Sequence record: NC_048182.1
Reading direction: 5' to 3' (one strand)
Length of the DNA: 64,000 bases
The notes beneath the pieces were generated by a model. That model saw only the letters and a program-made list of their open reading frames with translations. It did no database searches and was not told where the DNA came from. Each line of letters starts with the position of its first letter. The stretch's first letter is position 1. Both the position numbers and the translations under genes were made by a program. Below, in pieces: positions 28,942 through 56,297 of this stretch.

Positions 28942-28972
28942 CCCCTACCCCTCCTCACGGAGTGGGTAGGGG
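28942..28972. terminator. Bidirectional terminator
   Basis: CCCCTACCC..CTCC-TCAC-GGAG..GGGTAGGGG between convergent genes. Confidence 0.8.
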
Positions 28973-31313: not shown

Positions 31314-31419
31314 TCACACATTCACCTTGTCTGTAAATTGAGAAGCGCACAGAGCGCCGTAGGCACTATGCCTTATCAAAGTATAGTCAAACCATAATTC
31401 ATGGTAATCTAACAAAGAC

Positions 31420-31448
31420 CCCTACCCACTCCGAAAGGAGGGGTAGGG
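31420..31448 (-). terminator. Terminator hairpin
   Basis: CCCTACCC-A-CTCC-GAAA-GGAG-GGGTAGGG. Confidence 0.7.
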
Positions 31449-34396: not shown

Positions 34397-34439
34397 TTAT
34401 AATACCCTTGCAAGGAAGTTACAAAACATTCAGCATAAA

Positions 34440-34471
34440 CCCCCTACCCCGCCCGAAGGTGAGGTAGGGGG
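34440..34471 (-). terminator. Terminator-like hairpin just 3' of the hammerhead
   Basis: Minus strand CCCCTACCTC-ACC-TTCG-GGC-GGGGTAGGGG; the U tract is weak. Confidence 0.6.
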
Positions 34472-34480
34472 AGTACGATC

Positions 34481-34580
34481 TTGCATCCGACGGTTCCTAA
34501 AGGTCTGGAATCCTTTATATCTGGAACCCGTTTCGTCCACTTGTTTTACATCGCCGGACTCGTCAGGGTTTGCGATGCTA
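34481..34580 (-). ncRNA. Hammerhead ribozyme (type I topology)
   Basis: Minus strand: CUGACGA (34566-34560), stem II GUCC/GGAC, GAAA (34534-34531), stem III ACGG(G)UUCC/GGAACCGU and GUC (34491-34489). Stem I is CC/GG plus GCAU/AUGC around a bulge. Confidence 0.85.
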
Positions 34581-35160
34581 CTCCACATGTAGTAGGGTGA
34601 GCTACCCGATATCGTGCTGGTACCCTGGAAGGGACCTATTAGTCAAGATGAACGTCAAAGTTCAAGACTGTATCGCAACTGTCGTTCGGGTAACTCAAGA
34701 GGTGCAGTAAGGCGTAAAGTAATCCGACGTGACATGCCTGTCTCGGTTTCTCTAGCTTACTGCAGAATGGGTGCAACGTTCCCAACTCTGATAGATGTTT
34801 CTTTTTATAACCGCCCTGGAAGGTGTTCGGGTTCTACCTTCATAGATAAGACGAGCATCACCTCGCCATTGCATTCAGCTTATGCTACAGGACATTCTAT
34901 CAGCGCGTCGCTGCGTCGCCGAGGCTAACCAGGGCAACACCCACCAGAGGCTACTTACAGTAGCGGACTTATAAGCCGCCGTTCACCGTCTGGATTTTCC
35001 TGAGTAGTAGCGTACTCAGGTTTTGCCTTCTCCAGCACTCGGGGAGGTGAGACCCCAAACCAGAGAAGGTCTTACAACCAATCTCAGTCGACTGGCAGAC
35101 CCCTGTTATTAGCCCGCATGGCATATAACCCAGATCTACACTTCCCGACACATCGGTTGT
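34481..35160 (-). ncRNA. Large structured non-coding RNA (about 680 nt), family unknown
   Basis: No credible ORF. At least six nested 8-11 bp helices, whose non-Watson-Crick positions are mostly G-U on the minus strand. Confidence 0.75.
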
Positions 35161-35432
35161 TATGCTGTTGCCATTTCCGGAGCATTGTCCGGATTAGCCA
35201 GCGTTTTCACCAAACCTTCGTAACCGCCTTTAATAAAGACGTCATCAACGAAGATCTGAGGAACAGTACGAACCACTTCACCGCAGATCTCAGACAGCTT
35301 TTCGCCATTGATACCTGCTTCAACGATGTTGATGTACTCAATTTCCAGACCTTTTTCTTCGGCCAGGGCTTTAGCACGATCACACCATGGGCAATTTGGT
35401 TTGCCATAGATCTTAACAACTTTGGTTTCCAT
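35160..35432 (-). CDS. grx: Glutaredoxin
   Basis: CPWC active site, TVPQIF and GGYE motifs. Confidence 0.95.
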   Translation of the reverse strand: METKVVKIYGKPNCPWCDRAKALAEEKGLEIEYINIVEAGINGEKLSEICGEVVRTVPQIFVDDVFIKGGYEGLVKTLANPDNAPEMATA

Positions 35433-35440
35433 TATAGTTC

Positions 35441-35566
35441 CTAACCAATAGTAATGTGAATAAAACTGAACAGCCAGATCAGACCTTCAATGGTGGCCCA
35501 GCCAGCTATTGCGCAGATCAGACCGAAAATTACGATCATTCCTGTCCAGGATCCGGAGAACCACAT
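35441..35566 (-). CDS. 41-aa membrane peptide
   Basis: MWFSGSWTGMIVIFGLICAIAGWATIEGLIWLFSFIHITIG with an AAGGTG RBS. Confidence 0.6.
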   Translation of the reverse strand: MWFSGSWTGMIVIFGLICAIAGWATIEGLIWLFSFIHITIG

Positions 35567-35886: not shown

Positions 35887-35972
35887 TGGTGGTAGAGGAA
35901 GGATTTGAACCTACGAAGCCCGAAGGCAACAGATTTACAGTCTGCTCTCGTTGACCGCTTGAGTACTCTACC
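35887..35972 (-). tRNA. trnY: tRNA-Tyr (GUA)
   Basis: Acceptor stem GGTAGAG/CTCTACC plus A-CCA, anticodon loop CTGTAAA, long variable arm and GTTCAAATC T-loop. Confidence 0.97.
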
Positions 35973-54181: not shown

Positions 54182-54510
54182 TGTCAAAAGGCTGGTCCGA
54201 TGGTGAGTGGACGTACATACCGGTTACTTTCACTCGTCCCATTATTGATACCGGTAAGACAGAACCACTTTGTTATATTTTAGAAAAGCTACCCAATCAT
54301 AGGGTAGCTAACCCAAACACATTACGAATGCATTTCCTTAACTGGATCGCTAACAACAATTTACAAGTTGGATTCGGTTACGAGTTTCTTCCTGATTTCC
54401 CGCGCTTATGTTTACCAATGGTAACTTATTTGCATAGCTTAAATTTAATTGCCGGATTCGATATTAACGATTACGGCTTTGTTACTTACGATAAGGATCT
54501 GTTAGAATGA
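54175..54510 (+). CDS. Hypothetical protein
   Basis: 111 aa, coupled to its neighbours. Confidence 0.7.
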   Translation: MVMSKGWSDGEWTYIPVTFTRPIIDTGKTEPLCYILEKLPNHRVANPNTLRMHFLNWIANNNLQVGFGYEFLPDFPRLCLPMVTYLHSLNLIAGFDINDYGFVTYDKDLLE

Positions 54511-56297
54511 AAGTTACTCTTTTGCTTGAGACTATTATCACTTCTGGTTTGTCCATGATTGCCCAACATCATGGTGGGACTATCGATACTCAAGCCAAAT
54601 TGCGCAATATCCTGACCAATGCAGCGATGACAGAAACCGGCCATATTCAAGGGCGTACTCATGAAGAAATCCAAGATCTGATTGCTCATGCTGTCGAATC
54701 GCGTGACCTGTCTTTGCTGATTGATATCACTAAAGAAATCGGAGTACATCGCCCTGGTGATTTACTGGGTTATTCTCGCGATGTTAAACGAATCCTTGAA
54801 GAGAGTGGATATACCACAGAACCTCTGTACTTGGCTCGCGATAATGAAATGATCAACCCAGGTCATGTTTCACAACACCTGGCAACAGGTCAAGTTCTTT
54901 ATCGTCTCCGTCAGGTTTATGTTTCTATCTCAAATACCGCCCTTTGTGCAGAGGACCGTTTAAAGGCAGTTAACATCTTTATTTCAATGTTAATTTGTAA
55001 TCCGCATTTACAACGCCGCGTAATTGACATGTGTTTAACCCCTGCGGTTATGGCAAATCACTTTGATCCATTGATGCCAGAAGCACGATTGGTTCGTTTG
55101 AAACACGTGCTGACTCAAATGGCGTCTGACACCATGTATAACCTGGAGCAAGAAGATAAGCCTCCGGTAGTCCCTCCTCTGAATCTGGTAGATGATGAGC
55201 CAGAAGAAAACTATGTCCCTAAACCAGTTCCTTGGTTACACTTCAGCGGTACTGATCACTTGGTAGCAATGAAACAAGAACATGGATCTCTGCAAGAGCA
55301 ACTGTCAGTATTCCATGGTTTACTTACTACCAAGGAAGGTACCCCAGAAGCACGTTTCCGTAATGCGGTCGCTTACGTCCATCGTTCTGAGTATCAACCT
55401 GCTTTATGTAAACTGTTGTTTGATAAAAACGGCATAGACTATCTGGAAACACTACACGATAATCGTTACCGCGCAGAGTTGGTTGGCGATGCTATTCGTA
55501 AAGAAGTTTCCAAGAAGCCAGAGACCAAATCTATCTACTCTCACCCTGGTCGTGCCAAGGCTGTTCAGATTGATCCAGGTACTGGTAAAACTAAGTCACC
55601 AATGGCTCAGGCTTTAGCTATAGCCGAAGAACAACAACGGTCGGTAGTTAAAAATGACATAGGGTCGCAGCTTAATGAGTTAATCCGGATCTTTGGTCCT
55701 CAAGCCCGCATCATTCCTTTTGGTGGTGCTAATCTACCTAAAGACCCATTGGCTGCAGTTAAAGCGATTATGGCTCAGTTGGATTTCGGTAACACTAGCG
55801 ATACTGTTCATACTTCTGAAACAACTGAACGCATTAAAACAGCCCTACCAGGACTGTTCAATGAAGACGGAACTCTGAACATGGTGGCTATTTGTACTCG
55901 TGCCAAAGATGAACCAAAAGCTCCTGAACCTAAGCCTATTGAAATCTCTGGTGGCGATCAGCAACTGCGTGATGATATCATTGCGATGTTCCAGGCACGT
56001 GGTGTCAAATACAAAGTTGTTGACGATGTTCCAAATATCGGGATCCACGAAGTTCATACTTACCAGATCCAGGTTGGTGGTGCAATCGTAGCTTTACAGC
56101 ACACTCCGTTTGATAAGAGCTGTAAATTGACCGCTCATCCTGTTGAAGGTAAAGCTTCGATGAAACCTTTAAACTGGCAAGCGCCAACGGAACATGTCCC
56201 AGAAATTTGGGATGAAATCCGTAATGCGTTAAACTACCAGGATGCTTATTGGCGTATTAACCATTTCTTGGATGAAGCTGGTTACGATACTTACTAA
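54507..56297 (+). CDS. Large multidomain hypothetical protein
   Basis: 596 aa with Pro-rich linkers; no recognised motif. Confidence 0.8.
   Translation: MKVTLLLETIITSGLSMIAQHHGGTIDTQAKLRNILTNAAMTETGHIQGRTHEEIQDLIAHAVESRDLSLLIDITKEIGVHRPGDLLGYSRDVKRILEESGYTTEPLYLARDNEMINPGHVSQHLATGQVLYRLRQVYVSISNTALCAEDRLKAVNIFISMLICNPHLQRRVIDMCLTPAVMANHFDPLMPEARLVRLKHVLTQMASDTMYNLEQEDKPPVVPPLNLVDDEPEENYVPKPVPWLHFSGTDHLVAMKQEHGSLQEQLSVFHGLLTTKEGTPEARFRNAVAYVHRSEYQPALCKLLFDKNGIDYLETLHDNRYRAELVGDAIRKEVSKKPETKSIYSHPGRAKAVQIDPGTGKTKSPMAQALAIAEEQQRSVVKNDIGSQLNELIRIFGPQARIIPFGGANLPKDPLAAVKAIMAQLDFGNTSDTVHTSETTERIKTALPGLFNEDGTLNMVAICTRAKDEPKAPEPKPIEISGGDQQLRDDIIAMFQARGVKYKVVDDVPNIGIHEVHTYQIQVGGAIVALQHTPFDKSCKLTAHPVEGKASMKPLNWQAPTEHVPEIWDEIRNALNYQDAYWRINHFLDEAGYDTY

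Follow-up and report, generated by a model that had tools for sequence, protein, structure and literature searches.

A predicted pseudoknotted hammerhead ribozyme forms the 3' domain of a large structured non-coding RNA in Edwardsiella phage pEt-SU and related jumbo phages

The genome of Edwardsiella phage pEt-SU (276,734 bp, genus Petsuvirus) carries an unannotated gap of 763 nucleotides (nt) between the genes coding for a glutaredoxin and a DUF7484 protein, and this gap houses a hammerhead ribozyme motif. The analysed stretch of 64 kb from record NC_048182.1, hereafter the window, is 100% identical to MK689364. Downstream of the DUF7484 gene lie a second open reading frame (ORF), tmk and the terminase gene. 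The gap itself is occupied, in the direction of the minus strand, by a conserved structured non-coding RNA (RNA-A), by the hammerhead, which makes up its 3' end, and by a terminator hairpin. The coordinates of all features are given in Table 1.

Direct reading of the minus strand revealed that all the hammerhead elements proposed in an initial annotation of the window are present in the positions listed in Table 1. A descriptor was developed which demanded the core, the G10.1-C11.1 pair, a stem II of at least 4 bp, GAAA, a stem III of at least 4 bp, UH and a stem I of at least 2 bp. This descriptor matched the window once and 300 dinucleotide-preserving shuffles not at all, while a simpler core pattern, expected 0.07 times per window, was present in 7 of 100 shuffles. 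The cleavage site predicted in the initial annotation agrees with hammerhead numbering, and the GUC preceding it is invariant in all 13 distinct sequences of the family described below.

Table 1. Features of the hammerhead, of the RNA that carries it and of their neighbourhood. Positions are those of the window unless the locus of a relative (L number) is given.
Feature	Position	Strand	Remarks
Complete hammerhead module	34483-34580	minus	type I: stem I open, stems II and III closed; read directly
Hairpin CUACU-ACAUGUGG-AGUAG	34578-34595	minus	directly 5' of the pseudoknot strand
Pseudoknot 5' strand CAUCGC	34577-34572	minus	pairs with loop II, 34554-34549
Spacer A	34571	minus	invariant; single nt between pseudoknot strand and stem I
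Stem I 5' strand AACC	34570-34567	minus	C-G, C-G, A.A and A-U with 34488-34485
Catalytic core strand C3-U4-G5-A6-N7-G8-A9 (CUGACGA)	34566-34560	minus	read directly
Stem II GUCC/GGAC	34559-34556 and 34538-34535	minus	includes G10.1-C11.1
Loop II, 17 nt	within 34535-34559	minus	pseudoknot 3' strand GCGAUG (34554-34549) and A-rich tail
Core G12-A13-A14 (GAA)	34534-34532	minus	invariant, 13/13
Stem III ACGG(G)UUCC...GGAACCGU	34531-34490	minus	ACGG/CCGU with A15.1-U16.1, UUCC/GGAA, distal UAAAGG/CCUUUA
Stem III bulged G	34527	minus	
Stem III apical loop AUUCCAGA	34504-34511	minus	
Predicted scissile bond C17/G1.1	34489/34488	minus	position from hammerhead numbering
Stem I 3' strand GGAU	34485-34488	minus	
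RNA-A, conserved structured non-coding RNA	34596-35159	minus	from the glutaredoxin stop codon; hammerhead is its 3' end
Terminator	34434-34471	minus	hairpin 34471-34440, GC-rich, UUCG-type loop, then UUUAUG; dG (free energy) -29.8 kcal/mol, z = -3.4
Glutaredoxin gene	35160-35432	minus	Pfam PF00462, 2.5e-14; co-oriented, directly upstream; syntenic in all relatives
DUF7484 'virion structural protein' gene	34396-33551	minus	downstream border of the gap
tRNA-Tyr	35887-35972	minus	co-oriented, upstream of glutaredoxin
RNA-B	L003 3078-3400 (Sureiya)		also in L011, L012, L009, L004, L006, L007, L010, L135, L139
tRNA-Met abutting the large RNA	L003 2311-2387 (Sureiya); L011 2253-2328 (N1M2); L014 2256-2332 (Yubaba)		
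Hammerhead-like matches of L005	8868-8947, 11172-11242, 11453-11536, 12123-12207		

Relatives of the pEt-SU element were recovered by BLAST and pattern scans. Cultured carriers are Pantoea phage Survivor, Serratia phages Sureiya and Yubaba, Klebsiella phage N1M2, Kosakonia phage Kc263, Shewanella phage SXP01, Pseudomonas phage OBP and Erwinia phage AH04, while four IMG/VR jumbo contigs and one metagenome contig represent uncultured carriers. Together they provide 13 distinct hammerhead sequences from phages of 250-285 kb with a constant gene neighbourhood and seven bacterial host genera. Alignment of these sequences revealed that the core is invariant in all 13 except for N7, at which C, U and A occur; H17 is always C and the pair G10.1-C11.1 is always G-C. 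The intact hammerhead with full core of the initial annotation was thereby borne out, and covariation in related phages, which it had suggested looking for, was found together with an uneroded core. Since the catalytic nucleotides are invariant and only N7 is free, the pattern is that expected for catalysis rather than for mere folding.

In the structural alignment (A4), 92.3% of the cells were paired as compared with 81.6% in shuffles, none of 500 of which reached this value, and registers slid against each other gave at most 63%; 26 cells had changed on both sides while 6.7 were expected. The helices contribute to this in different ways. All four positions of stem I covary (CC/GG, CACC/GGUG, CUAU/AUAG, ACAU/AUGU, CAG/CUG), and the stem is 3-4 bp long and never closed across the family. 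In stem II three positions are invariant and one covaries, the pair 10.4-11.4 changing from C-G to U-A in four sequences, so that GUCC/GGAC becomes GUCU/AGAC. The proximal 4 bp of stem III, ACGG/CCGU, are invariant, its distal helix forms in every sequence, and the apical loop YUCCAR is kept in 12 of 13. The hairpin located 5' of the pseudoknot strand also has a covarying stem (CUCUC/GAGAG, CCCU/AGGG, CCCC/GGGG, CUUCC/GGAAG) and its loop is usually UGGUG. The minimum free energy fold of pEt-SU draws an extended stem I (GGAGUA/UACUCC and others) in this region; it was rejected, as the relatives conserve the local hairpin on the same 5' bases. The sequence UGGUG occurs in pEt-SU both in the loop of this hairpin (34583-34590) and at 34942-34946, where it is the invariant strand of a long-range helix of the large RNA. 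A pairing of the UGGUG hairpin loop with YUCCAR was considered and is not supported: in the metagenomic member L135 the hairpin ends in a GAAA tetraloop, although the loop of stem III is retained.

The best-supported helix of the hammerhead is the pseudoknot between loop II and the 5' flank. Its 6 bp are paired in 97.4% of the cells of the 13 sequences, four of the six positions covary, and one position shows four pair types. In a permutation test 64 of 66 cells were paired, a value matched by none of 5000 partner permutations and by no slid register. RNAalifold, which is unable to draw pseudoknots, picked this helix over stem II. The tertiary contact that the initial annotation had read from complementarity in pEt-SU is therefore a conserved trait of the family. 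In experiments on all three hammerhead types, pseudoknots were able to take the place of loop-loop contacts; a shortened or mutated pseudoknot slowed cleavage 20- to >100-fold, and even constructs whose stems were very short proved active (Perreault et al. 2011, PMC3088659). When the pseudoknot was credited in a crude additive estimate, the hammerhead fold was -2.1 to +5.1 kcal/mol from the nested optimum in all members, and pEt-SU, at +2.9 kcal/mol by the same crude estimate, was not an outlier. The short stem I, which the initial annotation regarded as the weak point, is indeed reduced to two contiguous bp in pEt-SU, but shortness is a covarying, family-wide trait; as judged from these comparisons it is a design of the family, for which the pseudoknot would compensate.

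No hammerhead was called in pEt-SU when Rfam was scanned at the gathering threshold (GA). A permissive scan returned Hammerhead_1 (RF00163) with 13.9 bits (GA 34, E = 3.7), in an alignment where stem III was truncated and stem I was not found; the check by Rfam models that had been suggested at the outset thus returned this model below threshold. The low score is attributable to the long insertion in stem III and the short, unclosed stem I, and it is a limit of the models, since the catalytic features are all present. A family covariance model (R1) was built from the structural alignment. This model found one copy per phage locus with 77-97 bits, its sole match in the window being the pEt-SU hammerhead (88.8 bits, E~1e-22), while unrelated hammerheads reached only 25-32 bits. 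Apart from the Rfam score, sequence and predicted structure agree throughout with the motif being a hammerhead, and one that is probably catalytic.

Analyses of the region upstream indicated that the hammerhead does not stand alone. RNA-A (~600 nt) is conserved in all 14 family loci with nhmmer E values of 1e-91 to 1e-148; it co-occurs with the hammerhead in 14 of 14 loci, and the spacing between the two is fixed. Together they measure ~680 nt in pEt-SU, of which the hammerhead is the last ~100 nt. RNA-A as an unannotated protein gene was ruled out: substitutions show no codon periodicity (p = 0.26-0.91; flanking ORFs, 1e-17 to 1e-35), 9-12 frame-breaking indels occur in every pair of sequences compared, and each frame has 4-14 stops. 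Two genes annotated as 'hypothetical protein' overlap the region, namely N1M2_252 (L011 2308-2820, opposite strand), which overlaps the tRNA-Met and the large RNA, and QYN80068.1 of Kc263 (L012 3008-3199), which overlaps the hammerhead itself; both are probably mis-annotations given the non-coding signature of the region.

The structure of RNA-A has 12 helices, four of which are long-range, with 65 pairs in all. Pairing amounted to 87.6% as compared with 75.0% in shuffles (0/500) and at most 47% in slid registers, and 39 pairs had changed on both sides as compared with 22.7 expected (0/500). Frequent G.U pairs place RNA-A on the strand of the hammerhead. RNA-A matched no Rfam family even at E <= 10 and showed no similarity to any E. 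coli RNA gene, and ARAGORN detected no tmRNA. The Rfam models of GOLLD and ROOL gave no match at E <= 10 in the pEt-SU gap and the 1.1-kb Sureiya unit, nor at E <= 1 on three loci. Group I or II intron, RNase P RNA and tmRNA were rejected as identities, having no support from Rfam, ARAGORN or BLAST, and the flanking genes are complete. By-eye resemblances of AAGUCCGC and GAUAGAAUG to known RNAs proved to be parts of local hairpins. No description of RNA-A was found in the searchable literature. A large structured RNA ending in a hammerhead thus appears to be undescribed and absent from Rfam 15, and RNA-A may represent a new class of large phage RNA.

The large RNA lies next to tRNA genes. At the site corresponding to that of the pEt-SU tRNA-Tyr, relatives carry 2-4 tRNAs. 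Only 2-3 nt separate the end of a tRNA-Met from the large RNA in three of them (Sureiya, Yubaba and N1M2), so that tRNA 3' processing could set the 5' end of the RNA there. A sigma-70-like promoter match (TTCACA-18-TATAAT, 11/12) was observed at window positions 35431-35460 of the minus strand, directly 5' of the glutaredoxin gene. It could start the large-RNA transcript, and such sites are no commoner in the region than expected by chance.

Downstream of the cleavage site, 10 of the 13 distinct members carry a second conserved domain of ~280 nt, RNA-B, which begins directly 3' of the site and is followed by the terminator. It contains the conserved blocks GCCYUAACYGUGAG, CAAACGGUCCGC, GAAGUUGUUGACAUCAA and GUAGACAGCC, and the stem of its first hairpin covaries, while the 13-nt loop of that hairpin is conserved. 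A weak match to the Rfam L10 leader was seen in RNA-B of Sureiya (L003 3213-3373; 26.3 bits, GA 44, E 0.057), including the ACCGUAGACAG block; it is probably spurious because most of the score derives from the terminator. A two-piece RNA held together by base pairing of RNA-A with RNA-B was rejected: a search for conserved pairing between them gave only weak, wobble-rich candidates, at about the level expected by chance for ~340,000 windows. RNA-B is absent from pEt-SU, Survivor and SXP01, where the terminator hairpin follows 17 nt past the cut. The hammerhead is intact in all three of these phages, and the pEt-SU and Survivor sequences still covary.

The terminator proposed ~20 nt past the cleavage site by the initial annotation is a real feature of the locus, conserved downstream of the RNA in all relatives, although a consensus terminator scan missed it. 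In pEt-SU this hairpin would make up the bulk of a ~55-nt 3' cleavage product. Its motif, CCCUAC...GUAGGGG and UUUAUG, which matches here at 34441-34470, occurs also at 31419-31448 and 28942-28972 of the window, where 0.03 occurrences are expected by chance, one copy following tmk and the other lying between two convergent genes. Copies with ~90% identity were observed elsewhere in OBP and N1M2. The CCCUAC...GUAGGGG hairpin is probably the standard terminator of the clade, and its recurrence at unit ends indicates that ORF281-ORF490-tmk is a separate transcription unit.

The distribution of the element was examined using the downstream DUF7484 gene as an independent anchor for finding loci. 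The 24 loci of EL-like jumbo phages so found (~40% protein identity) carried neither a hammerhead nor the large RNA within 3.5 kb. A scan of 185,579 bacterial and archaeal genomes yielded no member of the family, the one hammerhead found being compact and unrelated; scans of bacterial genomes and metagenomes together gave one further member, L135, and one duplicate, L136, the rest being unrelated compact hammerheads. A loose scan of IMG/VR with an upstream-block pattern returned >100 loci, all of which were chance matches by nhmmer. Considering the negative EL-like loci and genome scan, the unit of ribozyme and RNA is confined to the clade of OBP, pEt-SU, N1M2 and AH04. An unrelated, GC-rich IMG/VR contig of 17.5 kb, L005, showed up to four hammerhead-like matches within 3.3 kb (Table 1).

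Elsewhere in the window, the beta subunit of a phiKZ-type multisubunit RNA polymerase is encoded. The initial annotation called the phage nucleus-forming, which for pEt-SU is a putative label. OBP, a relative of pEt-SU, is among the listed phages that encode chimallin, the nuclear shell protein (PMC10299810). No homolog of the phiKZ chimallin, gp54, was found within the window, and a tblastn search with phiKZ gp54 returned 102 matches at E <= 1e-5, none of them from Edwardsiella; chimallins are very divergent, with only 22-25% identity between genera. A 596-residue ORF (54507-56297, plus strand) was considered as a chimallin and rejected, showing no similarity to phiKZ gp54 or any PDB chain. 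It belongs to no PHROG family and has no PDB relative.

Taken together, it is probable that the motif is an active type I hammerhead which forms the 3' domain of a ~680-nt structured non-coding RNA, and that its job is the maturation of the 3' end of that RNA, not the processing of a downstream mRNA. The large RNA would be transcribed from the minus strand in line with tRNA-Tyr and glutaredoxin. During transcription the 6-bp pseudoknot between loop II and the 5' flank would form and align stems I and II alongside each other; the core would be completed, and the RNA cut after C17, as soon as the 3' strand of stem I (4 nt) has been made. By hammerhead chemistry, the large RNA would end in a 2',3'-cyclic phosphate enclosed within the folded ribozyme, and the downstream piece would leave with a 5'-OH. 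With a stem I of only 3-4 bp this piece should dissociate, making the cut effectively irreversible. In most relatives the released piece would be RNA-B and the terminator, so that the ribozyme would also separate two RNA domains, while in pEt-SU, where RNA-B is lost, only a ~55-nt terminator hairpin would be released. We infer catalysis, end chemistry, timing and the benefit to the RNA from the sequences. The initial annotation had already predicted a defined end for the upstream RNA; an end at C17 is retained here as a prediction, but the RNA so ended is a structured non-coding RNA of ~600 nt and not the tail of an mRNA.

Several observations weigh against this interpretation. None of the six Rfam hammerhead models reaches its threshold, stem I of pEt-SU is weaker than that of any other member, and three relatives have a stem II of 3 bp with a C.A or C.U mismatch. 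In pEt-SU the cut takes off the terminator hairpin only, and the benefit there is not obvious. Moreover, 'maturation' names a step and not a purpose. The position of RNA-B directly after the cut site in 10 of 13 distinct members raises the alternative that the main role of the ribozyme is to separate RNA-A from RNA-B and that the pEt-SU hammerhead, with its poor stem I, is a leftover which cleaves without consequence. This is unlikely, although it is the foremost of the alternatives: the core is fully intact in all three phages devoid of RNA-B, and compensatory changes that distinguish pEt-SU from Survivor, in stem I as well as in the pseudoknot (C-G vs U-A), indicate continued selection after RNA-B was lost. 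In the DUF7484 tree the absence of RNA-B needs two changes, in which case the hammerhead would have been retained twice, and a single loss is not rejected (approximately unbiased test, AU p = 0.069). An intact, covarying hammerhead in the phages without RNA-B suggests that what counts is the defined end which cleavage would give to the upstream RNA.

The initial annotation had also proposed that cleavage gives a 5'-OH end to read-through mRNA of the 33551-34396/tmk operon. In favour of such processing of ORF281-ORF490-tmk transcripts, the hammerhead is co-oriented with the first ORF and lies 92 nt upstream of it in pEt-SU, and hammerheads upstream of phage genes are known (PMC3088659). This role is now disfavoured and seems quite improbable, because a strong, recurrent unit-end hairpin intervenes between hammerhead and ORF in every relative, the distance between the two varies from 92 to 890 nt, with an ORF of the opposite strand between them in three contigs (L004, L007 and L010), and EL-like phages have the gene pair with no hammerhead within 3.5 kb. 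Still less credit is due to a hammerhead-shaped fold that serves as a structural module of the large RNA with no or negligible cleavage in vivo. The sub-threshold Rfam score and the shortness of stems I and II could be read in this way, whereas C17 and the unpaired G5, A6, G8, A9, G12, A13 and A14 are invariant while the neutral N7 varies, and the architecture resembles that of pseudoknotted hammerheads which are active in experiments (PMC3088659). A chance match to the hammerhead consensus, conceivable for the core pattern alone in view of its recurrence in shuffles, is refuted by the empty descriptor shuffles and by covarying conservation in 13 distinct sequences from seven host genera, and its probability is negligible.

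By its sequence and predicted fold the pEt-SU ribozyme belongs among the hammerheads that are stabilised by a pseudoknot (Perreault et al. 2011, PMC3088659; Rfam clan CL00010, closest model Hammerhead_1). It shares with them the core, the three-way junction and G10.1-C11.1, a 6-bp pseudoknot between the stem II loop and the stem I side which replaces loop-loop contacts and compensates for short helices, and the setting in a phage intergenic region. Unlike them, the family has an open stem I of 3-4 bp with the pseudoknot reaching to the 5' flank 1-2 nt past it, and a two-part stem III extension of ~34 nt with the YUCCAR loop; unlike free-standing intergenic hammerheads, the ribozyme is built into a structured RNA of ~600 nt as its 3' domain. 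Multiple hammerheads flanking genes have been described in prophages (Perreault et al. 2011, PMC3088659). These resemble the present case as RNA-processing sites in phage transcripts, and L005 has such an arrangement, while each genome of the pEt-SU family has a single hammerhead, which holds a fixed place within a non-coding RNA and does not bracket protein genes. HDV-like (hepatitis delta virus-like) 'theta' ribozymes attached to phage tRNAs define tRNA ends. They are likewise small self-cleaving ribozymes which set an RNA end within a phage stable-RNA transcript, but belong to another ribozyme class and act on tRNA, not on the end of a large non-tRNA RNA.

The large RNA resembles GOLLD and ROOL in being several hundred nt long with many covarying helices, and GOLLD and ROOL also have pseudoknots (bioRxiv 10.1101/2024.12.08.627333; PMC5737381). 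In phages both are 'often near tRNA islands', and a Met-tRNA precedes one GOLLD (bioRxiv 10.1101/2024.12.08.627333; PMC5737381), as it does the large RNA in Sureiya and N1M2. As with GOLLD and ROOL, no protein partner is evident. Unlike them, the large RNA is unmatched by their Rfam models and is restricted to a single clade of jumbo phages with genomes of 250-285 kb. Neither GOLLD nor ROOL is known to carry a self-cleaving ribozyme.

The large structured RNA to which the ribozyme belongs is a more notable result than the ribozyme itself. This family of ~0.7-1 kb shares the tRNA-side niche of GOLLD and ROOL, which were recently shown to build RNA-only nanocages. As a tentative reading, for which the odds are slightly short of even, the hammerhead may be the built-in maturation module of an undescribed large ornate RNA, a stable, self-processed machine that acts during infection, either architectural like the GOLLD and ROOL nanocages or catalytic, and for which the 2',3'-cyclic-phosphate end would be functional. 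If so, this RNA would measure ~680 nt in pEt-SU and ~1 kb with the second domain in most relatives. The finding also means that curated hammerhead models miss real members with a long stem III and a short stem I. Phage hammerheads have been known since 2011 and their purpose has been mostly obscure; here a job can be read, at the end of a large RNA, and the role of phage hammerheads becomes directly testable in culturable phages such as OBP on Pseudomonas fluorescens.

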